Positions 2,841-62,379 are shown, counted from the stretch's first letter. The stretch is 64,000 nucleotides of DNA from Diplonema japonicum (GCA_964019335.1 OZ025668.1:558001-622000), one strand, 5' to 3'. Notes: generated by a model from the letters alone, not told the origin. Numbers and translations: made by a program.

Positions 2841-2858
2841 TTGTCCCCTCAAAAAATA

Positions 2859-39092: not shown

Positions 39093-39164
39093 TTTGTGTA
39101 AACAGCCCAACCCATCAACTCATGCCTGTGGTGGTGCTGTTTGCTTTAGATGTAAGTTGCCTTC

Positions 39165-41270
39165 CCACCCACCCCTTTCTCGTGCTGACCGTTAGTTGCC
39201 GTTCTCATCAGTGGGAAGTCAGATGTAGTTCTCACTCATCCCCAAAAGGGTATGAAAAAAATGAACAATTGTAGGTTATCGTTGTCATCATAAAAATAAG
39301 AGTGGCCTACCCCAGTCTCGGTGTCTGTGATGCACCCTCATGTGGCATTTCAGGCCGAAAGAAGGCCTAATTTCCACCTGATGTCTCTTGCACCGCTTGT
39401 GCCTGCCCTCTCAGCTCCCACCCTTTGAACAATCCCAGCCATGTTCTTTCTCCCAACCGTTTAGGGGTTGTCAGGTGCACTGGGAGCACCGCAACCAGGA
39501 CACAGTTGGTGACAATTCAACACCTTCCCACATCTCGGGTTGTGTCGCTTCTCCTGCTCGCTCATCTTGTCAGGTGAATTTGCCTTTCTCAGCACTGAAG
39601 CCTTTCGAGGAAGGTCTAGGTCCGGACTCTGATCCAGGTGGCTGTCACAGGGGATTCGATGTGTCTAATTTCCACCTGATCCAAATTCTCGACTCTCCAA
39701 ACATCTCCCAGTTGCGTAGGGGTGCTCCTTTTGATGTGTTCAAAATAACGGGCGCCAGGGAAGCTCTTGGTGAAGGTACTCTTCACTCGAATCTTGAATG
39801 TGTTGCTTCCAGTGTGCAGGTAAGGATTAACCGCACTTGGTGATCAACATCCTTGTCTCTTTTCTCTTTTTTTTTTTCGTGTCTGGGCCCCACCTTAACA
39901 CTTGCCGCCTACAAGTGGTGGCCAGGCAAGCTGACTCGGGTGCCGTGCTGTCTAATTACAAGCCTGCACAGTCTCGGTGTCTGTGATGCACCCTCATGTG
40001 GCATTTCAAGCCGAAAGAAGGCCTAATTTCCACCTGATGCCCTCTTAGCTCTTGATTGTCACCCTTTCCGCCACCAGCCGTTCTAGTTCGGTCACCCTAC
40101 AGTGCCACCATTGCTGCACCGGGGCCAGTACCACCAAGCACCTTTTAAAACAAACCCCAGCCATGTTCTTTCTCCCAACCGTTTAGGGGTTGTCAGGTGC
40201 ACTGGGAGCACCGCAACCAGGACACAGTTGGTGACAATTAACGAGGAAGGCCGGTAGCTCTCTCACGGTTGTCTGGACCCATGACTTGATCCAGGTGGCT
40301 GTCACAGGGGATTCGATGTGATGTCTAATACAACTAAGCCTGCACTGTCTCGGTGTCTGTGATGCACCCTCATGTGGCATTTCAGGCCGAAAGAGGGCCT
40401 AATTTCCACCTGATCCATATTCTTGACTCTCCAAACATCTCCCAGTTGCGTAGGGGTGCTCCTTTTGATTTGTTCAAAGTAACGGGCGCCAGGGAAGCTC
40501 TTGGTGAGGTACTTTTTGTCGTTCATCACATTCTACTCTCGAATCTTGAATGTGTTGCTTCCAGTGTGCAGGTAACGATTAACCGCACTTGGTGATCAAC
40601 ATCCTTGTTTCTTTTCTTCTTCTTTTTTTTTTTTCAGTGGGTGTCTGGGCCCCACCTTAACACTTGCCGCCTACAAGTGGTGGCCAGGCAAGCTGACTCG
40701 GGTGCCGTGCTCAGGAACCAAGGACACAGTTGACACATCCACATCTCGGGGAAAAGATCTCCTGCGAAGGAAGATGTGAAGCTCCCTTCCAGGGTTGTAA
40801 TGCCCCTCCAGTCATGTCGCTTCTCCTGCTCGCTCATCTTGTCAGGTGAATTTGCCTTTCTCAGCACTGAAGCCTTTCGAGGAAGGTCTAGGTCCGGACT
40901 CGGAGGGCTTTTGCCTTCCCCCCACCCACCCCCTTTCTCGTGCTGACCATTAGTTGCCGTTCTCATCAGTGGGAAGTCAGATGTAATTCTCACTCATCCC
41001 CAAAAGGGTATGAAAAAATGAACAATTGTAGGTTATCGTTGTCATCATTAAGAGTGGCTGATCTCGCAGGTTGCAGACCTCCATTTTGATTTGTTCAAAA
41101 GGATGAAATGTTTAATTCTAGTTCGGTGTTAATCACCCTACGGTGCCACCATTGCTGCACCGGGGCCAGTACCACCAAGCATGCCATTTATAACAAACCG
41201 GTTCTGGGGGAAAGATCTTTCTGGTTTTTGGGAAGACGAAGACTTGCCACCAGGGGTTGCGATACCCTGT
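39165..41270 (-). ncRNA. Intergenic polycistronic snoRNA cluster (AGA-box single-hairpin guides plus box C/D RNA)
   Basis: Same modules as in the cyclin introns but in a different order; each folds on the minus strand as stem-pocket-stem with AGA 14-16 nt from the pocket; C/D copies at 39204-39292 and ~40962-41052. Confidence 0.85.
41202..41268 (-). ncRNA. Divergent paralog of AGA-box guide A
   Basis: Keeps pocket arms (atcgcaac / agatcttt), G/C lower stem and AGA while the upper stem is replaced. Confidence 0.75.
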
Positions 41271-41392
41271 TCTCGTTGCGATAAATTGGTACACACAAAA
41301 TAAAAAAATAAGAAAAAAAAGGGGGGGGACTATTTTTTTCTTTTTTTTCTTTTAAAAAGGTGCTCCTTCGGTTCCACTCGCGTCCCCTGTGC

Positions 41393-42313
41393 TTACTTCT
41401 GATCTGACGGGCGGTACAACGTGTAAGGATACCGGAGGGGTGGGGGTGGTTTCAAGCCGCCGCATTCGCAGAGGCGGAGTTCTTCTTCCTCTTCTTCTTC
41501 CTCCTCCTCTTCTTCATCTGATTCTTCCTGTTCCTCTTTTTTAACTATTGCAGAAGCAGCTGCAGGGGGTCCTTGCCACGAAGCGAGTTTATGCAAATTG
41601 TACTCACGATGCTCTTGGTACTGGTCTATGATGCCAAGACACGCTGTGGTCTTGATAATGGTGATGATGATGGCAAGGGATGGTTTTTTAAGGTCGACGA
41701 TGGTCCTGTCAGCTCGCATGTGTTTGGCAATTGAGTCGTAGATAATGTTGCGGTCTAGGATAGGGTTAGAACAGATCTTCTTGGCCCAGATAATGGAGTA
41801 GGAGAGGAGCCCGATGGGGCCTTGGGCGTCCGACGCCTCTGTGACGTAAGGTTTCAGTTCTCGCTCGATGGCTTCGGGGTGTGCGTTGATGGTGGTGATG
41901 ATGGGTTGCATCTTGTAGACGAACCGTGTCTCTTGCTTCCCTGTTTTGAGGATGCCCCCCGCGATTTGTTTCACAGCCTCACGTGGGTCGATATCGACGC
42001 CGTCCTTGAACTTGTACATTATCCATCCCTTGCAAGGTGTGTCAATGGCAACCCCAATATCGTCAGTCGGGCTTTTCTGTTGCAAGCCCTGTTCCAGCAT
42101 CTTGGATATGCTTAGGTTAGCATCCATGCCTGTTTCGGCATCTTTCTTAACGTGTCGTGCTACTAGTGATTTGATCTCCTTGACGGCCTGCCCTGCTTTG
42201 AAGGGATCGCTTGTGAACAGAATCCCGCGGAGCCCCGGACCGAAGCTGCTTCCTCCTCCATAGTTCCCACGCTTGCCCCCGTTGGCACCCCCTTCCCACG
42301 GTCGCTTCCCCAT
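41393..42313 (-). CDS. THUMPD1: THUMP-domain protein 1 (Tan1-like tRNA acetylation adaptor)
   Basis: GILFTSD..AVKEI, DTPCKG, TRFVYKMQPI, VDLKKPSLAIIITIIK..CLGI..YNL, acidic tail. Confidence 0.85.
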   Translation of the reverse strand: MGKRPWEGGANGGKRGNYGGGSSFGPGLRGILFTSDPFKAGQAVKEIKSLVARHVKKDAETGMDANLSISKMLEQGLQQKSPTDDIGVAIDTPCKGWIMYKFKDGVDIDPREAVKQIAGGILKTGKQETRFVYKMQPIITTINAHPEAIERELKPYVTEASDAQGPIGLLSYSIIWAKKICSNPILDRNIIYDSIAKHMRADRTIVDLKKPSLAIIITIIKTTACLGIIDQYQEHREYNLHKLASWQGPPAAASAIVKKEEQEESDEEEEEEEEEEEELRLCECGGLKPPPPLRYPYTLYRPSDQK

Positions 42314-43436: not shown

Positions 43437-44948
43437 TTAAATATTCATCTGCTGCTTGATAACAGGTTGATGATACGCCGCAGGTGTGTAAGGCTGGTAA
43501 TCATGAGCAGCATACGTATGAGGCTGCTTAGCAAAGGTGGTGACCTGCGGTGGGGGAGGGAGGGGGTTCTGCGTCTTGAATTCCTCGACACGTTCATCCA
43601 GCTTGTCTCCCACCTCGCGCTCTCCAGAAGGATCCACAGTACCGCCCTCTCGTACCTCCCCGTACACAAAATGCACGTCTTTCAACTCTGCCAGACTTTC
43701 TTTGCTGAAATCGGAGAAATCGACTGTTTTAACGTCCCTGTACCTCTTGTAGACAGAGGACATTGGGAGGAACCTGATTAGAAGTCGTTCCACGAGAAAT
43801 TTTGCGATCGAGAACAAACCCGTTGCTATCATCAGCGTTTTCATCAGTTCGGCGAACGAAAATATGGCCACGTAACCCGCAGGCACGATCACCATGCGGA
43901 TTCCATGCCTCTTCCACACACTCCTCTTGACGTAGCCCGGGCGTGTTGTCTCGAAGAACGACTCCTCATACATGTACTCCACACCTTTCAAAGAGAACGT
44001 TCTGTACGCATATTGAAGCTCTGTGTCGATGCCTGTCCCATCGTACGAGACAATGACGAGGATCACAATGCCGTCGTACCTTAGGGTGTCGTTGGAAGAG
44101 ATTTTTGTGTTTAATGTTGTGATTCCAGTTGCTTGGAGAAGCTGCCGCACTGTGAAGATGTCACCTGGTCTTGACCGGTCTGCTTCAGTGCATGGTTTGT
44201 CCACATCCGGCTGGCTCATCCCCGGAGGGGTCCCGCCGCAGAACGACGCCCATGCGTTGCCATTGTTGTCTTCAAAGACTCCTCTATGCATGTCTTGTCC
44301 CATTACAATTGTTTTCGACTCCCGCCCATAGACACCGTGGTCTATCATGATGGTCATGTCTTCGATGCCTTGTGTGTAGTACGGTGTTACGCGTTGTACT
44401 TGCCATGGGGCGCATGCGTTGCTGCTTTTGTTGAGCCTGCATTGTGATGGGAGTTCTTGGTATTCGGTTACTTTAACCCGTGAAGTGATGAGAACCGAGT
44501 ACTCCTCAGTAGGGGGTTTTATGGTGTTGTGTCTGTCCCAGTTAACGCATTCTAACATGCCTGTGTCGGAGCCGAATGCGTTGAGGGAGGTGATGGGGTT
44601 CCATGTGCAGCCTGTTGTGGTAGTGCATGTTGATTCTGTGGTCTGTGCGGGGCATTGTGATGCGCCGGTGCAGGTTCCTCCGCAGCCCAATGAAGGGCAG
44701 CAGTGTGTCGCGACCTCCGTGGAGTCGCCTCGGCGTACTGAAACCGTTGCGAACCCGACCGGTTCGTCCTTGATCAGATACCCCTTCTGCAGGATCACCT
44801 CGTAGATCACGACGTACACGAACAGCGCGATCATGATCAAGATACGCGCCATGCCAAGCTTCCTGTCCCGGATGACCACACGGCGCGGGGTTTTGTAGGC
44901 AAACAGATCATCGGCATCGACATCAAGAACCTTTTGCACGAATTTCAT
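43437..44948 (-). CDS. P2X receptor-like ion channel
   Basis: FAYKTPR (YxTxK/R) ..IRDRKLG, TM1 then KGY, GDIFTV..LL..G, LRYDG, KRHGIR..G..FSF then TM2. Confidence 0.88.
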   Translation of the reverse strand: MKFVQKVLDVDADDLFAYKTPRRVVIRDRKLGMARILIMIALFVYVVIYEVILQKGYLIKDEPVGFATVSVRRGDSTEVATHCCPSLGCGGTCTGASQCPAQTTESTCTTTTGCTWNPITSLNAFGSDTGMLECVNWDRHNTIKPPTEEYSVLITSRVKVTEYQELPSQCRLNKSSNACAPWQVQRVTPYYTQGIEDMTIMIDHGVYGRESKTIVMGQDMHRGVFEDNNGNAWASFCGGTPPGMSQPDVDKPCTEADRSRPGDIFTVRQLLQATGITTLNTKISSNDTLRYDGIVILVIVSYDGTGIDTELQYAYRTFSLKGVEYMYEESFFETTRPGYVKRSVWKRHGIRMVIVPAGYVAIFSFAELMKTLMIATGLFSIAKFLVERLLIRFLPMSSVYKRYRDVKTVDFSDFSKESLAELKDVHFVYGEVREGGTVDPSGEREVGDKLDERVEEFKTQNPLPPPPQVTTFAKQPHTYAAHDYQPYTPAAYHQPVIKQQMNI

Positions 44949-46520: not shown

Positions 46521-49115
46521 TTAATTCTTCGTTTTCCCAGAGTCTTCAAGAGCGATGGCCTTGTTGACCAAAGCCTCGAACTCATGATAATACAAGTTGT
46601 TGTGGATACGAATCATGGGTGTAAGGGAGGACACGTGGTGGTCTTGCACTATGCCGAATGCGTTGGTGTCGATGCCGACCGAGAAGAGCACCTCCATCTG
46701 GTACCTCCCGATGGACCCCGGGTCCATGTCGTTGTACTTGTAAACCTTCATAACAATATGCGAGAGGTAGTGCAGCTGGATGGGGTCTGCCACAACATGG
46801 AAGGGAATGGTTTCCCCTGAGTGATACAGCATGTTGTACAAGGCAGAGATGTGCGACTCGGAGGAGAAGTAGAGGCGCGTCCTCGGCTCGTCAATACCTT
46901 GCAGCTCTTTGGTATCCTGCTGCCATTGCTTCAGGAGCGGTGTTATGATCTGAGCCCCGATGAGTCTCCTGCTCTCCGGTGACAGGCCATACTCCCCAAC
47001 ACCCACGAAATTATTCAACACCTGTGCGAGCTCAAACAAAGGGTACAGGTCCAACGGGAAAAGAGCCATTTGGTTGTATGACACATCGTAGCTGATGTAG
47101 TCAAAGATGTCGCTCACCTTTGAGGTGTCGAACCGGCCCTTCTTCGGGCTGAAGAAGTCTCCTGCCAGCTTCGTCCACCGCTGTCTGACAAGGGCGCATG
47201 ATTCATCGCGGTGCAGCGGCTTCCCTTCAGGGATGTGGCGGATGAGCTCCTCCATCAGCCTGTGGCAGTGTCGCATTGCTCGTTTGGGTGTTTGCTTCAA
47301 CTGGCAGATTGCCTCGAACCCAGGTAGGTGCTTCCAATTCTCGCACTCCTCTAGTGAGTCGACATGCATCACTTCATCGATCATCGACTTGCATTCTTCG
47401 ATTGCCTTCTTTGCCTTCTCCGTGTCGTCCAGCGCCTTGCATATTTCCTTCCCCCTGTCACCTGGGTTGATCATCGACTCGTCCCACTGCGATGCGCATG
47501 TCGACGCGAACTCCATTGCAGTGTTCTTCACGCGTCTTTCGTTGTTGGCAAACACATCTATCTTGTGGGGCACTTCGTTCCCGCGGAGCACGCGTCTGTT
47601 GAACTGCTTGCCTAGGTTCCTTGCTTGCATCCTACCTGCGTCTGTGAGCCACCCGCCCCACTTCAAGATCACCTGCACCTGCGTCACCTCGTTGTCGTCG
47701 GAGTACGCCTGCGGTTTGATCTGCAGCTTCAACCCCTCCGCCTCCCGTGTCATCACGTCTACCATGTTCTGATACTTCTGGCAGTCGTCGGCCGACTCGG
47801 TCGCTGCTTTTATGATCTCAGCGAAGGCCTCCCCCCACGACATGATGGGCTCCGACGGGATGTCCGTCCCCTTGATGACCAGTTCTGGGTGCGGTCCAGG
47901 CATCCCGTTGAAGGCCTTTTTGATGATAAGCGAGGACTTTGTCTTCAATTTGATCTTTTGCTTAGGCGTTCTGTCGCCGTGGCGGAAGAGGGCGATAACG
48001 CCCTTCAGCTCGCGCTTGCCGGGACGGTCGGCGGTCATGCGAGAGAGGCCGCGCTTGCGCATTTCCTCCAAAAAGATGTCGCAGATGATGCTGGACGCAG
48101 CGTCGTAGTACTCGTTGTTCCCTTTGACGAAGGACCAGCCGTTCACGTCGCAGACGTAGGACTTGTCGGCGGTGCGGAGGAGATCGAAACCGCAGACCCG
48201 TTGCCGGAAAACCTTGACGATCTTCCTTGCGATCTGGCGTTCGTACTCCGAGAGGGGTGTGTTGCAACGGATCTCCTTGCCGTTCTCATCACGCTGCACC
48301 TCACCATCGACAACGGGGGACTTCCTGCTCTCGGCGTGTGCATAGTCAGCCCCCACAGTGTACACCTTCACATCCTGCGCACTGGACGTCTCAACGAACT
48401 CCTCATAGATGTAAGACCCCGCACGCCTGATCTTGTTCACATCGGGGTGGAACTCGGAGGACTTGTTCCCAACCTTTCTGAAGAGGTGTCTGCTGCCGGT
48501 TTGTCCTGCGTAGTAAATACGTATATTGTGGTCTTCAGAGTTGACCGGTTTTTCAACAAACGGTTTGTCAAGTCGAACGCCATTGACGACAATGTAGTCG
48601 TCCTCCTCCTGAATGACAGGAGACAGTGCCCCGTCATGCCCGTCACGTGAGCACACAACATGGCGGACAACTGGAATGTTGTTCCTGACAAGTGCGTGGT
48701 ATACAGAGCGGCGGTCTAAGAGGACTTCTTGTTCCCTGGGTTCCGTGAGGACGAACATGTCAGGGTACATGTGGGTGTACTCGATCGCCTTGTCCAGCGG
48801 GAAGCCATTGCTGAAGAATGGGATGCAGCAGTCTACCTTCGGCCAGCTTTCCACAGGTTCACCGATGACCATTTGTTCTGCAAAGCAGACGATTTCGAAC
48901 CTGCCGCTGTCGTTGATTCTTCTCAAGAACTCCTTCATTGGTTTGCTTGTTTGCTTCTTGCCCATGCAGCAGATCCCTAGCCTGTACAGACCCTGTGGGT
49001 CACCCCCGCTTCCAGGGGACGCACAAAACCGCTGATCCTCTTGCGACTGGTAGGCCGAGAAGGCCGTACTGTCAATTGAACAGCATTTGCTTAACATTCT
49101 CTTCCCCCCCTCCAT
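46521..49115 (-). CDS. VIP1: Inositol hexakisphosphate/diphosphoinositol-pentakisphosphate kinase (ATP-grasp + histidine phosphatase)
   Basis: SKPM, FSNGFPLDKAI, KPFVEKPVNSEDHNI, DVKVY, HAESRKSPVVDG, DVNGWSFVK, RHGDRTPKQK, LKWGG, TRLYFSSESHI, LHYLSHI. Confidence 0.95.
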   Translation of the reverse strand: MEGGKRMLSKCCSIDSTAFSAYQSQEDQRFCASPGSGGDPQGLYRLGICCMGKKQTSKPMKEFLRRINDSGRFEIVCFAEQMVIGEPVESWPKVDCCIPFFSNGFPLDKAIEYTHMYPDMFVLTEPREQEVLLDRRSVYHALVRNNIPVVRHVVCSRDGHDGALSPVIQEEDDYIVVNGVRLDKPFVEKPVNSEDHNIRIYYAGQTGSRHLFRKVGNKSSEFHPDVNKIRRAGSYIYEEFVETSSAQDVKVYTVGADYAHAESRKSPVVDGEVQRDENGKEIRCNTPLSEYERQIARKIVKVFRQRVCGFDLLRTADKSYVCDVNGWSFVKGNNEYYDAASSIICDIFLEEMRKRGLSRMTADRPGKRELKGVIALFRHGDRTPKQKIKLKTKSSLIIKKAFNGMPGPHPELVIKGTDIPSEPIMSWGEAFAEIIKAATESADDCQKYQNMVDVMTREAEGLKLQIKPQAYSDDNEVTQVQVILKWGGWLTDAGRMQARNLGKQFNRRVLRGNEVPHKIDVFANNERRVKNTAMEFASTCASQWDESMINPGDRGKEICKALDDTEKAKKAIEECKSMIDEVMHVDSLEECENWKHLPGFEAICQLKQTPKRAMRHCHRLMEELIRHIPEGKPLHRDESCALVRQRWTKLAGDFFSPKKGRFDTSKVSDIFDYISYDVSYNQMALFPLDLYPLFELAQVLNNFVGVGEYGLSPESRRLIGAQIITPLLKQWQQDTKELQGIDEPRTRLYFSSESHISALYNMLYHSGETIPFHVVADPIQLHYLSHIVMKVYKYNDMDPGSIGRYQMEVLFSVGIDTNAFGIVQDHHVSSLTPMIRIHNNLYYHEFEALVNKAIALEDSGKTKN

Positions 49116-49845
49116 CCTTTTTTTTTTGTTCCCTTGCGGGGAAATAACAGAGAAAAACATTAATATTTTTTTTTTCTTTTTGTAAGAAGAGAGGGAGGAA
49201 AGGGGGGGGAGGGGGGAATAAAGTGGTAGAAGAAAAAAAAAAGGGGGGAGAGGCGAAAGAGAGAGGCTTTGCAGGTCATCTAGACGATGGATTTCGTTTC
49301 TTTTCCTTTCTTTTTTTACATAAACCTGTTTGAAGCCGATCGCGTATATGGGGGGGGGGGGGTAAAATAGGAAAAGAACAGGGGATCTAAGGGATAATTT
49401 ATCTTTCCAATTTTCTTTTCTCCGTTCTTCTTTTGACGCTTGTTCACCCACATCTCTTTTTTGTCTTCTTCTTTCTTCTTATCAAGAATAAAAAAGAAAA
49501 AAGAAGGGGGGAAAAGATGTAGTTGTGACACGACCGCCAAACGGCAAAAAAAAACAAAAAACAGGGAACAATTATTTTTTCCAGAAGTAAAGAGAAGGAA
49601 AACGAAAGGAACAAAATAAAAAGGGGCATCTAAGGGGCTAAAACTGAACAAGGTTCCAAAAAATGGGTTTGACAAACAGATTTTTTTTTTAAAAAAACTT
49701 AACTATTCTGAAGGAAAAGGAGATGGGAAGGGAATGGAAGAGGTTAAAAGAAACTAGAATTTTTTTTTCAGTCCGTAGAGGTCTAATTTTTTTGTGGGAA
49801 TTTTTGACACGAGTACATCCTTGTTCTCAAGAAGAGAATAGCAAC

Positions 49846-52800
49846 CTAATCCCGCATTTCAGCAACTGAGTCGAATGTCCGGGACACACACCCATAACGA
49901 GAATGGCTGTACTTCTTTCTCACTGCAGCAACTCTCAACTTCGGTACCTGTGAGCAGTGTGATAGGTATCCTTCGCATATCCATACCCTCTTCATGTGCT
50001 CATCAAGCAGCTCCACCACTTCATAAAGGTCGCTCTCGTAGTACCTGGAGGCTTCCTGCAGCGCATCGGTCCACACCTCAGGGACACCAAGCACCCTGCG
50101 AGAGAGGAGCACACACGCCGCTGCCTGTGGTGTTGTTTTGTTTGTGAAGTTAGGAAGTATATTACCTGCATCGAGGGTGCAAACCCGCACAGCTTCCCGC
50201 ACATCTGCGTTTGCTCCGCTAGGTACTCCGCACTGTACTTCATCGTGTCGTCCGTGTCGTCCAGCTGCGTCAGCTGTGTAAGGAACTGCCAGATCGTCGG
50301 CACCGTCAGGTTGTAGTCAAGTTCCACCAGTACATTCTTCTCCATCTGTGGTTTAGGCTTAAATTTGGTTTTGTCTTTTTTTTTGTGGTTTTCTTCTTTT
50401 GTTTTGGTTTATCACCCCCCCCTCATTTTTTCTCCGGGTTTCACATTTTTCTCCCATTTCCTCATCAGTGGGAAGTCAGATGTAGTTCTCACTCATCCCC
50501 AAAAGGGTATGAAAAAATGAACAATTGTAGGTTATCGTTGTCATCATGAGGACAGAACGTCGAATGTTTCTCCCGCAGTGTCTTCGGGTGCCTCTCCTCC
50601 TTCATGTCCACCATTCTATTCTCCCAGTTGCGTAGGGGTGCTCCTTTTGATTTGTTCAAAATAACGGGCGCCAGGGAAGCTCTTGGTGAAGGTACTCTTT
50701 TTGTTGTTCATATTCCTCCTTGAATGTGTTGCTTCCAGTGCAGTGTGCAGGTAGAGACTAACCGCACTTGGTGATCAACATCCTTGTCTCCACTGTCTTC
50801 TCTCAGTGGGTGTCTGGGCCCCACCTTAACACTTGCCGCCTACAAGTGGTGGCCAGGCAAGCTGACTCGGGTGCCGTGTGTCTAACTAAATAAGCCTGCA
50901 CTGTCTCGGTGTCTGTGATGCACCCTCATGTGGCATTTCAAGCCGAAAGAAGGCCTAATTTCCACCTGACGTCTGTTGCACCGCTTGTGCCTGCCCTCTC
51001 AGCTCCCACCCTTTGAACAATCCCAGCCATGTTCTTTCTCCCAACCGTTTAGGGGTTGTCAGGTGCACTGGGAGCACCGCAACCAGGACACAGTTGGTGA
51101 CAATTCAACACCTTCCCACATCTCGGGTCGCTACTCCTGCTCGCTCATCTTGTCAGGTGAATTTGCCTTTCTCAGCACTGAAGCCTTTCGAGGAAGGTCT
51201 AGGTCCGGACTCGGAGGGCTTTTGCCTTCCCCCCCACCCACCCACCCCCTTTCTCGTGCTGACCATTAGTTGCCGTTCTCATCAGTGGGAAGTCAGATGT
51301 AGTTCTCACTCATCCCCAAAAGGGTATGAAAAAATGAACAATTGTAGGTTATCGTTGTCATCCTTAAGAATTGTCTAAATAAACTCGCACTGTCTCCACT
51401 GTCTCGGTGTCTGTGATGCACCCTCATGTGGCATTTCAAGCCGAAAGAAGGCCTAATTTCCACCTGATCCAAATTCTCGACTCTCCAAACATCTCCCAGT
51501 TGCGTAGGGGTGCTCCTTTTGATGTGTTCAAAATAACGGGCGCCAGGGAAGCTCTTGGTGAAGGTACTCTTCACTCGAATCTTGAATGTGTTGCTTCCAG
51601 TGTGCAGGTAACGATTAACCGCACTTGGTGATCAACATCCTTGTTTCTTTTCTTCTTCTTTTTTTTTTTTCAGTGGGTGTCTGGGCCCCACCTTAACACT
51701 TGCCGCCTACAAGTGGTGGCCAAGCAAGCTGACTCGGGTGCCGTGCTCAGGAACCAAGAACACAGTTGGTGGTCTCTCGTCTGCTTCAACATCCACATCT
51801 CGGGGAAAAGATCTCCTGCGAAAGAAGATGCAAAGCTCCCTTCCAGGGTTGTAATACCCCTCCAGTCGTGTCGCTTCTCCTGCTCGCTCATCTTGTCAGG
51901 TGAATTTGCCTTTCTCAGCACTGAAGCCTTTCGAGGAAGGTCTAGGTCCAGACTCGGAGGGCTTTTGCCTTCCTCCCACCCACCCCTTTCTCGTGCTGAC
52001 CGTTCGTTGCCGTTCTCATCAGTGGGAAGTCAGATGTAGTTCTCACTCATCCCCAAAAGGGTATGAAAAAATGAACAATTGTAGGTTATCGTTGTCATCA
52101 TTAAGAACTGTCTAAATAAGCCTGCATGCACTGTCTCGGTGTCTGTGATGCACCCTCATGTGGCATTTCAGGCCGAAAGAGGGCCTAATTTCCACCTGTG
52201 TTGCTTCCTCAATGCACGGGTATGCTGCCCGGGACAAAGTTAGCGGTAGCGGCCACCTGTCCTTCACCACATCTCGGGGAAAAGATCTCCTGCGAAGGAA
52301 GATATAAAGCTCCCTTCCAGGGTTGTAATGCCCCTCCAGTCAAAGTCCCCTCCCCACCCCACCCCACCCCACCCCACCCCTCCCGTGAACACACCATGAG
52401 CATCTCGTTCCTGGTGTAGGTGTTTGCAGAGATGTGCACGAAGTCGCGCACCTCAGGCGGCATCACCTCCTCGTACTTGCAGGCAAGCATCATCGCAACA
52501 CACCCGATAAGCTGAAGCTTCTTCTTCTCCACAGGCTGTGGTTTCGTGTGTTGTTCTTGAGTTCCACCCCACCCCTTCTGAAGCATACCTGGCACATGAG
52601 GTACCTGTCGAGTATGTTCACCGCGAGGTACATGGTCTCAGGCCTGCACTTGTACTTCAGGTGGACGTCGACCAACCAGTCGACCAGGATGGCACGCATC
52701 TTGTCCGTTACCTCCACTTGGCAGATGGAGAGGTGGTTCTGGTGGATTAGCGTGTGCCCCTCCTCCCTGTGCAGAAGGTCCATGATGTCATCTACAAAGT

Positions 52801-52918
52801 CCAGCACGCGGCAGCAGTGGTTTTTAGGCTTGGTGACACCCCTGATGGTGGCCTTGTTGGCTCTGGGAGAGATGTTCAGGGACCTGAATGTGATATCGCC
52901 GAGCGCCGTTCTCTCCAT
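49846..52918 (-). CDS. Mitotic (A/B-type) cyclin, copy 1; introns 52536-52588, 50346-52394, 50125-50165
   Basis: D-box-like RTALGDIT; MRAILVDWLVDVH, LQLIGCVAMMLACKYEE, ME..VL..LDYNL..PT; the splices give a continuous cyclin box. Confidence 0.93.
50460..50551 (-). ncRNA. Box C/D snoRNA (representative of ~10 copies)
   Basis: cctcATGATGA...CTGAtgagg with complementary ends; the D guide ctgacttccc pairs with conserved LSU GGGAAGUCGG. Confidence 0.85.
51034..51099 (-). ncRNA. AGA-box guide G (target unassigned)
   Basis: ccaac/gttgg lower stem, ggttg..ggtgc/gcacc..caacc upper stem, AGA 14 nt from the pocket. Confidence 0.75.
51399..51466 (-). ncRNA. AGA-box guide E, predicted SSU target GUCUGUGAUGC-psi-CCU
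   Basis: 3' pocket gcatcacaga complementary to conserved SSU UCUGUGAUGC; ggtg/cacc stem; AGA at 15 nt. Confidence 0.75.
51489..51560 (-). ncRNA. AGA-box guide B, predicted LSU target GUAGG-psi-A-AGGGAAG
   Basis: Pocket arms cttccct / cctacg; AGA at 14 nt. Confidence 0.85.
51577..51641 (-). ncRNA. AGA-box guide C, predicted LSU target GUUGCUU-psi-U-UGAUC
   Basis: Pocket arms gatca / aagcaac; ggatgt/acattc stem; AGA at 14 nt. Confidence 0.85.
51677..51744 (-). ncRNA. AGA-box guide D, predicted LSU helix 69 target UAAC-psi-A-UGACUC
   Basis: Pocket arms gagtca / gtta; upper stem gcttgcc/ggcaagt (this copy has one mismatch); AGA at 15 nt. Confidence 0.85.
52269..52336 (-). ncRNA. AGA-box guide A, predicted LSU target AGAUCU-psi-G-GUUG
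   Basis: gggg/cccc stem, pocket cattacaac / agatct, cctg-gaagg/ccttc-cagg upper stem; AGA at 14 nt. Confidence 0.82.
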
Positions 52919-53981
52919 TTTTTAGTGGTTAAAAAAAACTAGTTTCTTTTTTTTAAAAAAACCTAGATGAGTTTGAAGAAGAAGTAAGAAAAAATGGGGT
53001 ATACGGTTAATTTAACTAAAGGCTCTGCAGAACTGAGAGCCTATCGTATCAACGAGAGGGGAAGAAATGCAAACAACAGACACTGCGAAGGGCCAAGGAC
53101 AGCATGTGAACCCACCCTTGCATAATACGTAAAAAAAAGGGGGGGCACCTCTTTTGTGGAAAAAAAATAGAAAAGGGAGCAAAGAGGAGATCTACCGCTT
53201 TTCTAATCTATGATCTATCTAAGGAAAGGCCTATACAAGTTGATAAGGTTAAAAAAAGAAATTTAAGAAAAAAGAAGAAAAAGGGTGTAACCCGCCAAAG
53301 CAGGCTTGATTTCGAAGGACTTAAGGGGGCAAGTGGGAGGGTAAAGAGTAATGAGTGTTAATTCCAGGCAACAGCCTAGATTATTTTCGTTGGATAAATA
53401 AAAGAGGGGGGGGGAAGAAAGTAAACTGTATTATAAACAGCTCGGAAAAAGAACTGGCCATTGTTCGTGCTTACGTCGTGTAAGGGCTCTCACATTACTC
53501 TTGTTCTTTCCCCCCCTTTAAACAACAAAATGCCAAGTTTATCCCCCCCTCTTTTCTTTTCTTTTTCGGTTCTTTTTTTTTTTAAACTCTTTTTTTTCTT
53601 CTTCTTTTTTTGAATAAACACTCGAATAATACGTGGGGTGCTGATTATATTTATTTATTTTTTTATTTTTATTTTTTTCCCACCACACGTGTGTGATACA
53701 AACACACCAGTGTGTGTGTGTGTGTGTTTTTCCCCGTCTTTTGTTTTGTTTTCTCGCTCTTTTTTTTTTTTTTTTTTAAATTAGAAATAACTTAATTGGT
53801 CTCCTGCCTTCGAAGGGGCGTGGGTTTGATCTATGCCTTTTTTTTTCTTCTTTTTTTTTCTCTTTTTCTTTTTCTTCTTCGTGCCTTTACAACCGGAGTT
53901 TTACATCTAACAGTGGTATGCATCAGCCGTGCAGCTATACACAGGGGTGGGGGGGTTCTGTCTAGGAAACATATGCGGGCC

Positions 53982-56825
53982 TTACTGCCCTGCGTAAGAG
54001 TCGAAGATCTGGGACACGCACCCATAACGAGAGCGGCCGTACTTCTTTCTTGCTGCACAAACTTTCAGTTTTGGGACCTGTTTGGGTATGTGGGTACGTG
54101 TGCTCAGGCATACCCTTTTCATGTACTCATCGAGAATGTCCACTATTTTAGCGTTGTAAAGCTCTTTTTGAGTTAACAGCGATTCTTCCTCTAGCTTCTT
54201 CGACCACACCTCGGGGAGACCAAGCACTCTGCGAGACAGGAGCACACACGCCGCTGCCTGTGGTGTTGTTTTGTTTGTGAAGTTAGGAAGTATATTACCT
54301 GCATCGAGGGTGCAAACCCGCACAGCTTCCCGCACATCTGCGTTTGCTCCGCTAGGTACTCCGCACTGTACTTCATCGTGTCGTCCGTGTCGTCCAGCTG
54401 CGTCAGCTGTGTAAGGAACTGCCAGATCGTCGGCACCGTCAGGTTGTAGTCAAGTTCCACCAGTACATTCTTCTCCATCTGTGGTTTAGGTTTAAATTTG
54501 GTTTTGTCTTTTTTTTTGTGGTTTTCTTCTTTTGTTTATCACCCCCCCCTCATTTTTTCTCCAGGTTTCACATTTTTCTCCCATTTCATCATCAGTGGGA
54601 AGTCAGATGTAGTTCTCACTCATCCCCAAAAGGGTATGAAAAAATGAACAATTGTAGGTTATCGTTGTCATCAAGAGGACAGAACGTCGAATGTTTCTCC
54701 CGCAGTGTCTTCGGGTGCCTCTCCTCCTTCATGTCCACCATTCTATTCTCCCAGTTGCGTAGGGGTGCTCCTTTTGATTTGTTCAAAATAACGGGCGCCA
54801 GGGAAGCTCTTGGTGAAGGTACTCTTCACTCGAATCTTGAATGTGTTGCTTCCAGTGTGCAGGTAAGGATTAACCGCACTTGGTGATCAACATCCTTTCT
54901 TTTCTTTTTTTTTTTCTCAGTGGGTGTCTGGGCCCCACCTTAACACTTGCCGCCTACAAGTGGTGGCCAGGCAAGCTGACTCGGGTGCCGTGCTCAGGAA
55001 CCAAGAACACAGTTGGTGGTCTCTCGTCTGCTTCAACATCCACATCTCGGGGAAAAGATCTCCTGCGAAAGAAGATGCAAAGCTCCCTTCCAGGGTTGTA
55101 ATGCCCCTCCAGTCGTGTCGCTTCTCCTGCTCGCTCATCTTGTCAGGTGAATTTGCCTTTCTCAGCACTGAAGCCTTTCGAGGAAGGTCTAGGTCCAGAC
55201 TCGGAGGGCTTTTGCCTTCCTCCCCCCACCCACCCCTTTCTCGTGCTGACCGTTAGTTGCCGTTCTCATCAGTGGGAAGTCAGATGTAGTTCTCACTCAT
55301 CCCCAAAAGGGTATGAAAAAATGAACAATTGTAGGTTATCGTTGTCATCATTAAGAACTTCTTGATTGTCACCCTTTCCGTCACCCTAGCCTGTTCTAGT
55401 TCGATGTTAATCACCCTACGGTGCCACCATTGCAGCACCGGGGCCAGTACCACCAAGCACCTTTTAAAACAAACCACAACCATGTTCTTTCTCCCAACCG
55501 TTTAGGGGTTGTCAGGTGCACTGGGAGCACCGCAACCAGGACACAGTTGGTGACAATTAACGAGGAAGACCGGTAGCTCTCTCACGGTTGTCTGGACCCA
55601 TGACTTGATCCAGGTGGCTGTCACAGGGGATTCGATGTGATGTCTAATACAACTAAGCCTGCACTGTCTCGGTGTCTGTGATGCACCCTCATGTGGCATT
55701 TCAGGCCGAAAGAGGGCCTAATTTCCACCTGATCCATATTCTTGACTCTCCAAACATCTCCCAGTTGCGTAGGGGTGCTCCTTTTGATTTGTTCAAAGTA
55801 ACGGGCGCCAGGGAAGCTCTTGGTGAGGTACTCCTTTTGTTGTTCATATTCCTCCTTGAATGTGTTGCTTCCAGTGCAGTGTGCAGGTAGAGACTAACCA
55901 CACTTGGTTGTATCCGTTGTCGCTTCTCTCAGTGGGTGTCTGGGCCCCACCTTAACACTTGCCGCCTACAAGTGGTGGCCAGGCAAGCTGACTCGGGTGC
56001 CGTGCTGTCCAACTAAATAAGCCTGCATGCACTGTCTCGGTGTCTGTGATGCACCCTCATGTGGCATTTCAGGCCGAAAGAGGGCCTAATTTCCACCTGT
56101 GTTGCTTCCTCAATGCACGGGTATGCTGCCCGGGACAAAGTTAGCGGTAGCGGCCACCTGTCCTTCACCACATCTCGGGGAAAAGATCTCCTGCGAAGGA
56201 AGATATAAAGCTCCCTTCCAGGGTTGTAATGCCCCTCCAGTCAAAGTCCCCTCCCCACCCCACCCCACCCCACCCCACCCCTCCCGTGAACACACCATGA
56301 GCATCTCGTTCCTGGTGTAGGTGTTTGCAGAGATGTGCACGAAGTCGCGCACCTCAGGCGGCATCACCTCCTCGTACTTGCAGGCAAGCATCATCGCAAC
56401 ACACCCGATAAGCTGAAGCTTCTTCTTCTCCACAGGCTGTGGTTTCGTGTGTTGCATTGGAACGTGCGCTTCCTTCTGAAGCATACCTGGCACATGAGGT
56501 ACCTGTCGAGTATGTTCACCGCTAAGTAGATAGTCTCAGGCCTGCACTTGTACTTCATGTGGACGTCGACCAACCAGTCGACCAGGATGGCACGCATCTT
56601 GTCCGTTACCTCCACTTGGCAGTTGGAGAGGTGGTCCTTCCCGACGAGTGTGAGCTGCTCCGTGTCTCTTAAGTGACGGAAGATGTCCCCAAACATGTCG
56701 GTGCTGAACGGCTCCTCCGGCGGTGCCATGTCCTCACATTTTGCATTCACCAACTTTGACGAGAAGGCCGCTGTGTTGGTGGACCTTCCCGTGATGTCGC
56801 TCAAGATCATTCTTTGTGTATCCAT
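53982..56825 (-). CDS. Mitotic cyclin, copy 2; introns 56437-56486, 54479-56295, 54258-54298
   Basis: Same exon structure; D-box-like RMILSDIT; divergent N- and C-termini. Confidence 0.93.
55392..55461 (-). ncRNA. AGA-box guide I, arms complementary to the SSU 5' end (GUUGAU..GCCAGUA); register ambiguous
   Basis: tactggc / gattaac flank a cggtgc/gcaccg stem; AGA 14-16 nt downstream. Confidence 0.7.
55575..55642 (-). ncRNA. AGA-box guide J, predicted SSU target UUGUCUGG-psi-U-GAUUC
   Basis: tcac/gtga stem, pocket gaatc / ccagacaa, cctgtgac/gtcatggg upper stem; AGA at 15 nt. Confidence 0.8.
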
Positions 56826-57681
56826 TGCACCCTGTCAAGGCAGGGCGTGGGGGAGGGGGATGGGGGAACCACGACAAATATTAAAAAATCAAAATCAAAG
56901 AGAGAGAAGGTAATAGAAGAAAAAAAGAAAAAGAAAAAAACAAAAGAAAAAAAAACTCTAGAAGAGGGAGAAAAAAAAAGAAAATTCTAGCTAAAATTAA
57001 TTTTTTTTAACACGGGATGGATGGGGCGATAAGGAGAAAGGGAAAGAGAGGGATACCTGGGAACAAGAGGGTATACACCCATAGAAGGAAAAAAAAAAAC
57101 AGGGGGGGAGGGGAGGGGGATATTCCCCGGAACGTGTGAAAAAGCGCCAAAATCATTTTTTTTTAAAAAAAAAAAGTCTTAGATCGATAAAAAAAAAAAA
57201 AAGAAAACCCCCATGTTCCTAGCCATATTGAGAGTGGTAATTGGGGGGCAAACCTATTTTTACGTAAAGACTAAGCCGGGGAGGGTTTGTCGACCCTTTC
57301 TTTTTAAAATCTTTTAATTTTGGCCACATATATATACCCCCCCCCCCCCCAGGTATAATTAAGTGCATGCGATAGTTAGGTTTCTGGCTGTGGTACTCGA
57401 TAAAATAAAATACATTGAATTTGTTTTAAATCGGTTTCCGTTTTCGTCGTCAGGAGCAGAAATAACGTCGGCGCACTCTATAGCCTAGAGGGGGCACGGG
57501 GGTAGCAATAGGCCTTCGAAGGGAGAGAGAATGGGAATTAGAGAGAGGGAGGTCTAGGGGAAGGGGGATCAGTCGAGAGGATTCCAAAGCATAATTACCA
57601 GAATGACTTTCAGCAGAGGGAACTGAGAACATCCTGTGGTACGTCTCAAGACCTTTTTTTTTTCTCTCTCTTTTTCCGTTT

Positions 57682-57724
<43 letters not shown>

Positions 57725-58005
57725 TTGTTGTTGTCTCTGACGAAAAAAAGTTAATTGTGAAGCAGTAGAAGGCATTTCACAAAGAACAAAGTACGATCTC
57801 TTAGTGATCTTTTTTTTTTAACACACTTTTCTTAATAAAGTGTTCTTTTTTATTTCCCCCCTCCTTTTTTATTCCACTTATACGCTGCTACCATTGGACT
57901 TTTTTTTTTTGATAACCACAATTATAATAAGTGTATTGTGTACAAATAATAATAAAAAAGGAGGAAGGGGTGACTTTTTTTTTTTTTTGGTGAATAGTAG
58001 ATTTC

Positions 58006-58006
<1 letters not shown>

Positions 58007-58039
<33 letters not shown>
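58007..58039. repeat. (CAA)n microsatellite
   Basis: Direct inspection. Confidence 0.95.
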
Positions 58040-58438
58040 AAAGTGAAGCACATAAAAACCCTAATGAAAGGACGAGACATGGTTGAATAAATGAATAAAT
58101 AAAATAATAATAAATAAAATGTAGTCTTTTTTTTTCTTCTTTTTTTTTTTTTTTTGCCCCCACCGAACCTCTGGCCAAAGGCACACCCTTTGGCGAAAGG
58201 CACAGATATGGAGCTGGAAGGAGGTGAACTTTAATCTGTTTCTTTTTCGTTCCTTTTTTTTTTCCCCCCACTTTCTTCTTCTGCTTTTGCAAAGAATCAG
58301 ACGGGCGACCGAGGGGGCTGGATGAATGATCAGTCCATCAGTGGTAACGAAATTTTGATTGCAAGAGTTTAGACTGCTTCTTTTTTTTTTTTTTTCCACA
58401 TTTTTTTCTTTCTCCTTTTTCTGTCAGGAGTTTCCACC

Positions 58439-61400
58439 TCATTCGTGCACAGCAACATCCGAGTCAAATATCTGGGACACACACCCATAACGAGAATGGC
58501 TGTACTTCTTTCTCACTGCGCAGACCTTCAACTTCGGTACCTGTGAGCAGTGTGATAGGTATCCTTCGCATATCCATACCCTCTTCATGTGCTCATCAAG
58601 CAGCTCCACCACTTCATAAAGGTCGCTCTCGTAGTACCTGGAGGCTTCCTGCAGCGCATCGGTCCACACCTCAGGGACACCAAGCACCCTGCGAGAGAGG
58701 AGCACACACGCCGCTGCCTGTGGTGTTGTTTTGTTTGTGAAGTTAGGAAGTATATTACCTGCATCGAGGGTGCAAACCCGCACAGCTTCCCGCACATCTG
58801 CGTTTGCTCCGCTAGGTACTCCGCACTGTACTTCATCGTGTCGTCCGTGTCGTCCAGCTGCGTCAGCTGTGTAAGGAACTGCCAGATCGTCGGCACCGTC
58901 AGGTTGTAGTCAAGTTCCACCAGTACATTCTTCTCCATCTGTGGTTTAGGTTTAAATTTGGTTTTGTCTTTTTTTTTGTGGTTTTCTTCTTTTGTTTATC
59001 ACCCCCCCCTCATTTTTTCTCCGGGTTTCACATTTTTCTCCCATTTCATCATCAGTGGGAAGTCAGATGTAGTTCTCACTCATCCCCAAAAGGGTATGAA
59101 AAAATGAACAATTGTAGGTTATCGTTGTCATCAAGAGGACAGAACGTCGAATGTTTCTCCCGCAGTGTCTTCGGGTGCCTCTCCTCCTTCATGTCCACCA
59201 TTCTATTCTCCCAGTTGCGTAGGGGTGCTCCTTTTGATTTGTTCAAAATAACGGGCGCCAGGGAAGCTCTTGGTGAAGGTACTCTTTTTGTTGTTCATAT
59301 TCCTCCTTGAATGTGTTGCTTCCAGTGCAGTGTGCAGGTAGAGACTAACCGCACTTGGTGATCAACATCCTTGTCTCCACTGTCTTCTCTCAGTGGGTGT
59401 CTGGGCCCCACCTTAACACTTGCCGCCTACAAGTGGTGGCCAGGCAAGCTGACTCGGGTGCCGTGTGTCTAACTAAATAAGCCTGCACTGTCTCGGTGTC
59501 TGTGATGCACCCTCATGTGGCATTTCAAGCCGAAAGAAGGCCTAATTTCCACCTGACGTCTGTTGCACCGCTTGTGCCTGCCCTCTCAGCTCCCACCCTT
59601 TGAACAATCCCAGCCATGTTCTTTCTCCCAACCGTTTAGGGGTTGTCAGGTGCACTGGGAGCACCGCAACCAGGACACAGTTGGTGACAATTCAACACCT
59701 TCCCACATCTCGGGTCGCTACTCCTGCTCGCTCATCTTGTCAGGTGAATTTGCCTTTCTCAGCACTGAAGCCTTTCGAGGAAGGTCTAGGTCCGGACTCG
59801 GAGGGCTTTTGCCTTCCCCCCCACCCACCCACCCCCTTTCTCGTGCTGACCATTAGTTGCCGTTCTCATCAGTGGGAAGTCAGATGTAGTTCTCACTCAT
59901 CCCCAAAAGGGTATGAAAAAATGAACAATTGTAGGTTATCGTTGTCATCCTTAAGAATTGTCTAAATAAACTCGCACTGTCTCCACTGTCTCGGTGTCTG
60001 TGATGCACCCTCATGTGGCATTTCAAGCCGAAAGAAGGCCTAATTTCCACCTGATCCAAATTCTCGACTCTCCAAACATCTCCCAGTTGCGTAGGGGTGC
60101 TCCTTTTGATTTGTTCAAAATAACGGGCGCCAGGGAAGCTCTTGGTGAGGTACTCTTCACTCGAATCTTGAATGTGTTGCTTCCAGTGTGCAGGTAACGA
60201 TTAACCGCACTTGGTGATCAACATCCTTGTTTCTTTTCTTCTTCTTTTTTTTTTTTCAGTCGGTGTCTGGGCCCCACCTTAACACTTGCCGCCTACAAGT
60301 GGTGGCCAGGCAAGCTGACTCGGGTGCCGTGCTCAGGAACCAAGAACACAGTTGGTGGTCTCTCGTCTGCTTCAACATCCACATCTCGGGGAAAAGATCT
60401 CCTGCGAAAGAAGATGCAAAGCTCCCTTCCAGGGTTGTAATACCCCTCCAGTCGTGTCGCTTCTCCTGCTCGCTCATCTTGTCAGGTAATTTGCCTTTCT
60501 CAGCACTGAAGCCTTTCGAGGAAGGTCTAGGTCCAGACTCGGAGGGCTTTTGCATTCCTCCCCCCACCCACCCCTTTCTCGTGCTGACCGTTAGTTGCCG
60601 TTCTCATCAGTGGGAAGTCAGATGTAGTTCTCACTCATCCCCAAAGGGGTATGAAAAAATGAACAATTGTAGGTTATCGTTGTCATCATTAAGAACTTCT
60701 TGATTGTCACCCTTTCCGTCACCCTAGCCTGTTCTAGTTCGATGTTAATCACCCTACGGTGCCACCATTGCAGCACCGGGGCCAGTACCACCAAGCACCT
60801 TTTAAAACAAACCACAACCATGTTCTTTCTCCCAACCGTTTAGGGGTTGTCAGGTGCACTGGGAGCACCGCAACCAGGACACAGTTGGTGACAATTAACG
60901 AGGAAGACCGGTAGCTCTCTCACGGTTGTCTGGACCCATGACTTGATCCAGGTGGCTGTCACAGGGGATTCGATGTGATGTCTAATACAACTAAGCCTGC
61001 ACTGTCTCGGTGTCTGTGATGCACCCTCATGTGGCATTTCAGGCCGAAAGAGGGCCTAATTTCCACCTGATCCATATTCTTGACTCTCCAAACATCTCCC
61101 AGTTGCGTAGGGGTGCTCCTTTTGATTTGTTCAAAGTAACGGGCGCCAGGGAAGCTCTTGGTGAGGTACTCCTTTTGTTGTTCATATTCCTCCTTGAATG
61201 TGTTGCTTCCAGTGCAGTGTGCAGGTAGAGACTAACCACACTTGGTTGTATCCGTTGTCGCTTCTCTCAGTGGGTGTCTGGGCCCCACCTTAACACTTGC
61301 CGCCTACAAGTGGTGGCCAGGCAAGCTGACTCGGGTGCCGTGCTGTCCAACTAAATAAGCCTGCATGCACTGTCTCGGTGTCTGTGATGCACCCTCATGT

Positions 61401-62172
61401 GGCATTTCAGGCCGAAAGAGGGCCTAATTTCCACCTGTGTTGCTTCCTCAATGCACGGGTATGCTGCCCGGGACAAAGTTAGCGGTAGCGGCCACCTGTC
61501 CTTCACCACATCTCGGGGAAAAGATCTCCTGCGAAGGAAGATATAAAGCTCCCTTCCAGGGTTGTAATGCCCCTCCAGTCAAAGTCCCCTCCCCACCCCA
61601 CCCCACCCCACCCCACCCCTCCCGTGAACACACCATGAGCATCTCGTTCCTGGTGTAGGTGTTTGCAGAGATGTGCACGAAGTCGCGCACCTCAGGCGGC
61701 ATCACCTCCTCGTACTTGCAGGCAAGCATCATCGCAACACACCCGATAAGCTGAAGCTTCTTCTTCTCCACAGGCTGTGGTTTCGTGTGTTGTTCTTGAG
61801 TTCCACCCCACCCCTTCTGAAGCATACCTGGCACATGAGGTACCTGTCGAGTATGTTCACCGCGAGGTACATGGTCTCAGGCCTGCACTTGTACTTCAGG
61901 TGGACGTCGACCAACCAGTCGACCAGGATGGCACGCATCTTGTCCGTTACCTCCACTTGGCAGATGGAGAGGTGGTTCTGGTGGATTAGCGTGTGCCCCT
62001 CCTCCCTGTGCAGAAGGTCCATGATGTCATCTACAAAGTCCAGCACGCGGCAGCAGTAGTCCCTAGGCTTCTGGTATTGCTGGCTTAGCACGCTGCCAAA
62101 GAGAGGCTTACTCGTGGAAGGCCCGATGTTCGTGGCGCTGTACGTAATGTCCCCTAAAACTGGTCTCGTCAT
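58439..62172 (-). CDS. Mitotic cyclin, copy 3; introns 61775-61827, 58939-61633, 58718-58758
   Basis: D-box-like RPVLGDIT; near-identical to copy 1 except at the termini. Confidence 0.93.
58939..61633 (-). ncRNA. Intronic snoRNA array in cyclin copy 3 (longest, ~27 modules)
   Basis: 2695-nt intron containing the union of the module series of copies 1 and 2. Confidence 0.88.
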
Positions 62173-62379
62173 CTTTGCAAGTTTATTCGCTCTTTTTTTC
62201 TTTTTTTTTTTCCCCCTTCACTTCCGTATTTTTTTCCTTCCTTTGGTTTCCTCGATTCGGTTTTTTTCTCTTTTTATTTTTATTTTTTTATGTAATCAGA
62301 TGTGTATAAGTTCGTTCTCTTTTAATTGATGAAATACACCCCACAAACCCGTTCCACGACAATATATATATTAAAAGAG

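Follow-up and report, generated by a model that had tools for sequence, protein, structure and literature searches.

Predicted snoRNA guide arrays in one intron of each of three tandem cyclin genes of Diplonema japonicum

We analysed a 64,000-nucleotide (nt) stretch of the Diplonema japonicum genome (GCA_964019335.1 OZ025668.1:558001-622000), called here the window, in which three cyclin genes (A, B and C) lie in tandem on the minus strand at 49.9-62.2 kb. Intron 2 of each of these genes is probably a polycistronic small nucleolar RNA (snoRNA) gene array that consists mostly of euglenozoan-type single-hairpin AGA guides together with one C/D RNA, while several of the modules are of uncertain kind or are decaying copies. 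We observed a modular array architecture, strict strand specificity, lower divergence inside the modules, complementarity of three hairpin families (H1, H2 and H8) to ribosomal RNA (rRNA) and exact splicing of the host intron. An earlier note, made from the sequence alone, had proposed a host-strand array of snoRNA-like modules with this composition, and it is supported by the structural scans and the box motifs described below.

The cyclin genes and their second introns are as follows; cyclin A was modelled from Pfam matches per exon and from transcript contigs, and its intron 4 and exon 5 were called from sequence only.

58439..62172, minus strand: cyclin A gene, 301 codons predicted, start codon at 62172
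62172-61828, 61774-61634, 58938-58758, 58716-58580 and 58540-58439, minus strand: exons of cyclin A
58939..61633, minus strand: intron 2 of cyclin A, 2695 nt, GT..AG, 30 modules
56825-56487, 56436-56296 and from 54478, minus strand: exons 1, 2 and 3 of cyclin B
54479..56295, minus strand: intron 2 of cyclin B, 1817 nt, 20 modules
52918-52589, 52535-52395 and from 50345, minus strand: exons 1, 2 and 3 of cyclin C
50346..52394, minus strand: intron 2 of cyclin C, 2049 nt, 23 modules

The earlier note had placed the arrays at 50346-61633 and given intron 2 a size of 1.8 to 2.7 kb. Both values hold: position 61633 is the first base (of GT) of intron A, position 50346 is the last base (of AG) of intron C, and the three measured lengths span the claimed range. 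The remaining introns of gene A are 53, 41 and ~39 nt long, compared with 2695 nt for intron 2, in which a (GGGGT)n tract stands at the 5' end and an A-rich tail containing CCACAG at the 3' end. The tract comprises five to six GGGGT units directly 3' of the 5' splice site (61618-61586) and occupies the same place in B and C; similar G runs also occur in intron 1 and within module H7. The tract in the RNA could fold into a G-quadruplex.

Protein searches were made one exon at a time. Exon 1 corresponds to positions 1-64 of the Pfam profile Cyclin_N and exon 2 to positions 68-112, and exons 3 and 4 correspond to Cyclin_C. Together with a destruction-box-like N terminus, these two folds are those expected of A/B-type (mitotic) cyclins. 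The N termini of A, B and C carry RPVLGDIT, RMILSDIT and RTALGDIT, respectively, at residues 3-12, with RxxLxDIT shared by all three. These motifs are similar to the destruction box of mitotic cyclins, which has the consensus RxxLxxxxN, and they fit it only in the RxxL..I core. Intron 2 interrupts the cyclin box between NEMLM and MEKNV, splitting the profile at position 112 in all three genes. The genome contains a large cyclin family, with 49 Cyclin_N matches including six exons of the trio; the other matches are mostly uninterrupted, and two on contig C2 may be split too.

Contigs of four public runs (X1 to X4) were aligned with window positions 58300-62300. A contig of ~1.4 kb in each of X1, X2 and X3, which come from two studies, joined 62070-61828, 61774-61634, 58938-58758 and 58716-58578 into one contiguous sequence. 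Introns 1, 2 and 3 were removed exactly as predicted (joints 61828|61774, 61634|58938 and 58758|58716), and the splicing across NEMLM|MEKNV that the earlier note had set as a check was thereby found, with 61634 joined directly to 58938 in three runs. In run X4, exons and intron were covered alike and no splice joints occurred, which means that its DNA does not contain the joined form. The spliced contigs show a few letter differences from gene A, and their 5' part matches gene C; they come from a paralogue or a close relative. X1 and X2 also contained low-depth intronic contigs of 150-240 nt with two or three modules each, some of them reordered, which may be precursor RNA or DNA carry-over.

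When the module families were mapped back to introns A, B and C, all copies of the 15 families (47-93 nt) lay on the minus strand, which is the host strand. Intron 2 of each of these spliced host genes holds several predicted snoRNA genes in the sense orientation. From its 5' end, the order in intron A is H1 U1 H2 H3 H8 U2 H2 H4 H5 H6 CD1 H7 U3 H1 U4, continuing with H3 H8 U2 H2 CD1 H7 U3 H5 X6 H2 H3 H8 U2 T1 CD1, and its recurring sub-blocks include H3-H8-U2-H2 and CD1-H7-U3. At 98-99% identity, introns B and C correspond to intron A with deletions.

The hairpin modules were scanned with rules taken from trypanosomatid H/ACA-like RNAs (PMC2613932): a stem I of 4-8 bp, a pocket, a stem II and an AGA 1-3 nt past stem I and 13-16 nt past the pocket. 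On the minus strand of intron A, this structure-only scan gave 15, 12, 8 and 6 non-overlapping matches at rising cut-offs, whereas dinucleotide shuffles (n=25) gave means of 4.2, 3.0, 1.4 and 0.24 at the same cut-offs, with a maximum of 1 at a score of >=24. The plus strand of intron A gave no hairpins in the same scan. The six best hairpins (score >=24) represent four families because modules recur in the intron. It is the module architecture as a whole that is beyond chance, not every single module.

Eight families (H1 to H8) fit a stem-pocket-stem hairpin with AGA 14-15 nt past the pocket, a spacing that agrees with the published rules, by which trypanosomatid H/ACA-like RNAs are single hairpins of 57-91 nt with three to seven perfect stem II pairs beside the pocket, a complementarity of 3-9 bp per side and AGA 3 nt from the mature 3' end (PMC2613932). 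In unconstrained minimum-free-energy (MFE) folds, H1, H3, H5 and H8 form both stems around the pocket and leave the AGA tail unpaired. The other four families match the single-hairpin shape only in the constrained scan: the MFE calculation favours a different fold for H2 and is ambiguous for H4, H6 and H7. The z-scores are modest, with only H5 reaching -3.5. The gap between stem I and AGA is 1-3 nt in H1, H2, H3, H5 and H8 and 0 in H6. Representative modules of intron A are listed here.

61508..61576, minus strand: H1, AGA at 61513-61511; MFE fold with a 9/9 pocket between lower and upper stem and an unpaired AGA tail
61370..61435, minus strand: H2, AGA at 61375-61373; fold from the scanner, d=15; present four times in intron A
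61274..61342, minus strand: H3, AGA at 61279-61277; MFE fold; stem I GGC[A]CCC/GGGGCC; pockets GAGTCA and GTTAAGGT
60822..60888, minus strand: H5, AGA at 60830-60828; most stable (z = -3.5); stem I of 8 bp
60163..60226, minus strand: H8, AGA at 60168-60166; MFE fold
60978-60913, 60813-60730 and 60589-60523, minus strand: H4, H6 and H7, from the constrained hairpin and AGA scan; the stretch 60523..60978 also contains H5 and CD1
60602..60694, minus strand: CD1, 93 nt; three copies in intron A
61507-61436, 61166-61091 and 60522-60450, minus strand: U1, U2 and U3, unclassified conserved modules
60380-60334, 59620-59556 and 59206-59140, minus strand: U4, X6 and T1, unclassified conserved modules (all six within 59140..61507)

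The module CD1 has the structure of a box C/D RNA, with a C box TGATGA near its 5' end, a C'-like TGAGTGA, a D box CTGA near its 3' end and a terminal stem GTTCTTA/TGAGAAC. Of seven different flank contexts, six retain a terminal stem of 5-7 bp; in one of them TTCTTA/TGAGAA is replaced by TCCTCA/TGAGGA, so that both partners of a pair have changed. Box C/D snoRNAs are defined by a C box (RUGAUGA) and a D box (CUGA) that a terminal stem brings together, and by a guide of at least 10 nt beside the D or D' box.

Among the paralogous copies in seven arrays, three in the cyclin introns and four elsewhere in the genome, the mismatch rate was 0.044 within modules, as delimited by structure or boxes, compared with 0.184 in the remaining sequence. 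The conservation between copies stops no more than 3-4 nt past AGA in H2, H3, H4, H8 and U2, which coincides with the expected mature 3' end of such RNAs; the U2 module itself terminates at a conserved AGA. Differences between copies of H1 and H3 lie mostly in the apical loop, with one upper-stem and one pocket position also changed in H1. The H5 copy on contig C90 has lost AGA and keeps two stem pairs through two-sided changes. Further damage was seen in the H8 copies at 61246-61193 and 59370-59306, which have AGG instead of AGA and a 5-nt insertion, in an H2 copy with a 13-nt deletion and in a CD1 copy with GGATGA.

The history of the copies can be read from the cyclin genes themselves (window 49987-62172). 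From mid-exon 1 to exon 3, with exon 2 and intron 2 included, genes A to C share 96-100% identity. In the 5' end of exon 1, in the sequence preceding that exon and from exon 4 onward, identity falls to 10-70%. This mosaic is a gene-conversion signature centred on the array intron. The arrays would have spread to the three cyclins by tandem duplication and would then have been homogenised by gene conversion.

Possible targets were sought in the ribosomal DNA (rDNA) unit (L004), with the small-subunit (SSU) rRNA at 191-2260, the 5.8S rRNA at 2393-2544 and the large-subunit (LSU) rRNA at 2750-6229. The pockets were fixed by structure, and shuffled pocket letters served as the control. The following candidate targets were found.

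H1: LSU U1508, 6+8 bp (6+9 in the isoform 60449-60381), P=0.004
H2: SSU U1699, 11+4 bp, P<0.001; the 11-bp 5' arm exceeds the 3-9 bp range
H8: LSU U2982, helix 89 region, 7+5 bp, P=0.006
H5: SSU U1428, 4+6 bp, P=0.06; weak and marginal
H3: best target LSU U2331, 4+6 bp, P=0.09 alone; marginal

Targets at P<=0.006 in three of the eight hairpin families are far more than chance would give. Any rRNA target support extends to five of the 15 module families and strong support to three, and all predicted targets sit within the conserved core of the rRNA. In the loop of helix 69, U2331 opens the sequence CUAUGAC and is presumably a universally pseudouridylated position. Yeast numbering could be transferred only for helix 69, where four known pseudouridine positions fell on U; the corresponding mapping failed for the helix 89 region, and we claim no yeast equivalences there. 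Trypanosoma brucei has four H/ACA-guided pseudouridines in helix 69 and four in helix 89 (PMC4855143). Other candidates were rejected. H7 was not accepted as a canonical guide, as its 5' side pairs over 10 bp with LSU 1906-1915 but its 3' side gives 0-2 bp or lies 12 nt off, and the alternative target LSU U2214 for H6 depends on a G-U upper stem. The long and short folds first given by the scanner for H3 had no target, and the helix 69 match arises from the MFE fold. The H8 variant at 61246-61193 has an altered 5' pocket, TACAACCAAG, that is complementary to LSU 1506-1515, adjoining the H1 target; this match may be due to chance or to a retargeted isoform. The rDNA unit itself (G000:C119:1-7100) is 6825 bp long and is present in at least five tandem copies. 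Its LSU fits the Rfam eukaryotic model end to end in 3480 nt and so has no large internal spacers of the kinetoplastid or Euglena type.

Several results weigh against this interpretation of the arrays. Six families (U1 to U4, X6 and T1) fit no class and fold no better than shuffles, and Rfam gave no snoRNA family either in the window at the gathering threshold or in intron A at E<=5. For H4, H6 and H7, no rRNA target exceeded chance. When the upper stem could be chosen freely, a target scan gave 66 matches against 24-74 in shuffles, with best scores alike, and was discarded. Exact antisense matches to rRNA of at least 10 nt numbered 13 against 12 expected, so there are no long C/D-type guides to rRNA. 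The guides of CD1 found no target above chance among the RNAs searched (the rDNA unit including its spacers, U2 and U6), the best duplex being 10 bp to LSU 1988-1997 and at chance level, and CD1 is thus a predicted C/D-box RNA with no target in that set. In addition, the array copies are recent duplicates, so that conservation and covariation among them stem from few independent changes, and that X1 to X3 are RNA is a tool's guess, backed only by the intron-less contigs of these runs. The U2 small nuclear RNA included in these searches is of the full-length 192-nt type and has at least seven genomic copies.

A comparison of intron A with the whole assembly located the same families at four further places, none of them adjoining cyclin exons.

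Window 39203..41199, minus strand: array of 21 modules in a different order, between a stop codon at 41393 and an acceptor near 39126
C21:542661-544656: array between a GST gene and an LRR gene
C21:547727-548911: array after a DUF1751 gene
C90:304591-305307: array after a NAD-binding gene, the most diverged (73-96%)

The array within the window lies in a spacer between co-directional coding sequences (39126-41393), with a CCACAG|G acceptor ~35 nt ahead of the next ATG. The cyclin introns terminate in CCACAG too, and in either setting a 3' splice site follows shortly after the array. Of 13 genomic copies of H3, eight are in cyclin introns and five elsewhere, while U1 and T1 modules occur in cyclin introns only. 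The guides are therefore not tied to the cyclins alone, as unrelated genes flank the same arrays in four spacers. The array family has two equivalent homes, cyclin introns and spacers upstream of splice acceptors, and both are most likely RNA that is discarded by splicing. The minus strand carries nearly all of the window's long open reading frames (ORFs), which form a one-strand gene cluster; a gene-specific transcriptional link is unlikely in such an arrangement, which resembles that of polycistronic units. Two of the minus-strand ORFs, at 43437-44948 and 46521-49451, are similar to a P2X receptor and to the inositol pyrophosphate kinase PPIP5K/Vip1, respectively.

By analogy with plant and algal intronic clusters and with trypanosomatid clusters, the following processing pathway can be proposed. 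The cyclin genes would be transcribed as part of the long one-strand cluster, and snoRNP proteins would bind and protect the modules on the nascent or excised intron. An endonuclease would cut the A-rich or variable spacers between modules, and exonucleases would trim the ends. The freed RNAs would direct pseudouridylation at LSU U1508, SSU U1699 and LSU U2982 and perhaps in helix 69. The requirement for internal cutting that the earlier note had raised is sound, as exonucleases alone cannot free 20 to 30 units, and it fits the plant and trypanosome precursors (PMC7671301, PMC4855143).

The position of the arrays inside mitotic-type cyclins invites the idea, put forward in the earlier note, that guide supply tracks mitotic cyclin pre-mRNA and so ties rRNA modification to division. 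The majority of H3 copies and all U1 and T1 modules are in cyclin introns, all three paralogues retain the array, and gene conversion keeps it intact. We nevertheless consider such coupling unlikely, and the claim is unsupported by our results: five H3 copies and four whole arrays lie outside the cyclins, the window is a one-strand gene cluster, and intron-derived RNA is uncoupled from the fate of the mRNA, tracking neither its stability nor its translation. In kinetoplastids, one-strand clusters are transcribed constitutively and control is post-transcriptional; the parallel with diplonemids is an analogy. A special cell-cycle link is not needed to explain the arrays. A related proposal is that cutting of the array in unspliced pre-mRNA destroys the cyclin transcript, so that guides and mRNA would be alternative products of each transcript and the array would restrain cyclin output like a brake. 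The release of 20 to 30 units does require internal cuts, a cut transcript could not encode cyclin because the array splits the cyclin box, and plant clusters are said, after Leader et al. in 1999, to be processable without splicing. In X1, however, the spliced contigs have ~10x the depth of the intron contigs, which points to efficient splicing; no cut intermediates were seen among the assembled contigs, and the arrays in intergenic spacers show that a host mRNA is not required. A brake of this kind therefore seems very unlikely. It is more doubtful still that the cyclin introns are the main guide reservoir and that competition between cutting and splicing links cyclin output to the supply of pseudouridylation guides, although such a link, if true, would tie ribosome tuning directly to mitotic entry without gene-specific control of transcription.

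The modules might also be a newly amplified repeat, or snoRNA pseudogenes in decay, that spread passively with segmental duplications and give rise to no stable intronic RNA. The copies are 90-100% alike, which has left little time for decay, damaged copies of H8, H2, CD1 and H5 exist, and six families have no class. Against this, divergence is four times lower inside the modules than outside, compensatory changes preserve stems in CD1 and H5, rRNA targets at P<=0.006 exist for three pockets, the strand specificity is strict, and modules are present in contigs of an RNA-like run from a related organism. We regard it as highly improbable that the repeats lack function, and the array of snoRNA genes remains the preferred reading.

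Parts of this arrangement have established counterparts. In animals, snoRNA hosts are mostly translation-related or noncoding genes, and hosts such as GAS5 and the ribosomal protein genes carry one snoRNA per intron, which is freed solely by debranching and exonuclease trimming. The cyclin arrays resemble these hosts in that the guides would come from spliced-out introns of a polymerase II transcript, but they differ in having many modules per intron instead of a single snoRNA. In Euglena gracilis, Moore and Russell (cited in PMC7671301) reportedly described in 2012 tandemly repeated snoRNA clusters with many isoforms and polycistronic transcription; that species is likewise a euglenozoan with clustered guides and single-hairpin pseudouridine guides. 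Multi-snoRNA introns are known from plants, Chlamydomonas and Ostreococcus, and the earlier statement that introns elsewhere usually carry one RNA was therefore too narrow (PMC7671301, with references 14 and 15 therein). In the clusters of rice, Arabidopsis, Chlamydomonas and Ostreococcus tauri (clusters 3 and 5), as in those predicted here, snoRNAs of mixed class lie in one intron of a protein-coding host gene, on the host strand, and are made from a polycistronic precursor that needs cuts between the units (PMC7671301). The present arrays differ from them in holding 20 to 30 modules per intron, in having a mitotic-type cyclin as host and in belonging to another lineage, as well as in their single-hairpin AGA guides, which contrast with the double-hairpin H/ACA RNAs of plants and algae, and in the occurrence of further arrays in spacers.

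Trypanosomatid clusters share with the present arrays guides that are single AGA hairpins, 57-91 nt long and with 13-16 nt between pocket and AGA (PMC2613932), and their reiteration within one-strand gene clusters (PMC2613932, PMC4855143). In trypanosomes, the clusters are processed from trans-spliced, polyadenylated precursors by a mechanism that is still unknown (PMC4855143). As in trypanosomatids, four of the seven arrays here lie between coding sequences, whereas the other three are in cis-spliced introns; trypanosomatids have only two or three cis-spliced genes and hence no intronic clusters (PMC11613528). C/D RNAs, in contrast to the trypanosomatid clusters, form a small minority here. 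AGA guides in reiterated mixed clusters are thus established for trypanosomatids and Euglena, as are multi-snoRNA introns for plants and green algae, and what is likely to be new is the combination of euglenozoan-type guides, cis-spliced introns, 20 to 30 units per intron and a cell-cycle gene as host. No paper on diplonemid snoRNAs was found in the literature searched. With 20 to 30 units per intron, the arrays may be among the largest intronic clusters, and, if our interpretation is correct, they would be well suited to a search for the nuclease responsible for cutting snoRNA precursors in euglenozoans. An intron-rich euglenozoan would then house trypanosome-style guides both in cis-spliced introns and in intergenic spacers, bridging the plant and algal arrangement and that of kinetoplastids and suggesting as a rule that such arrays can reside in any RNA that splicing discards.

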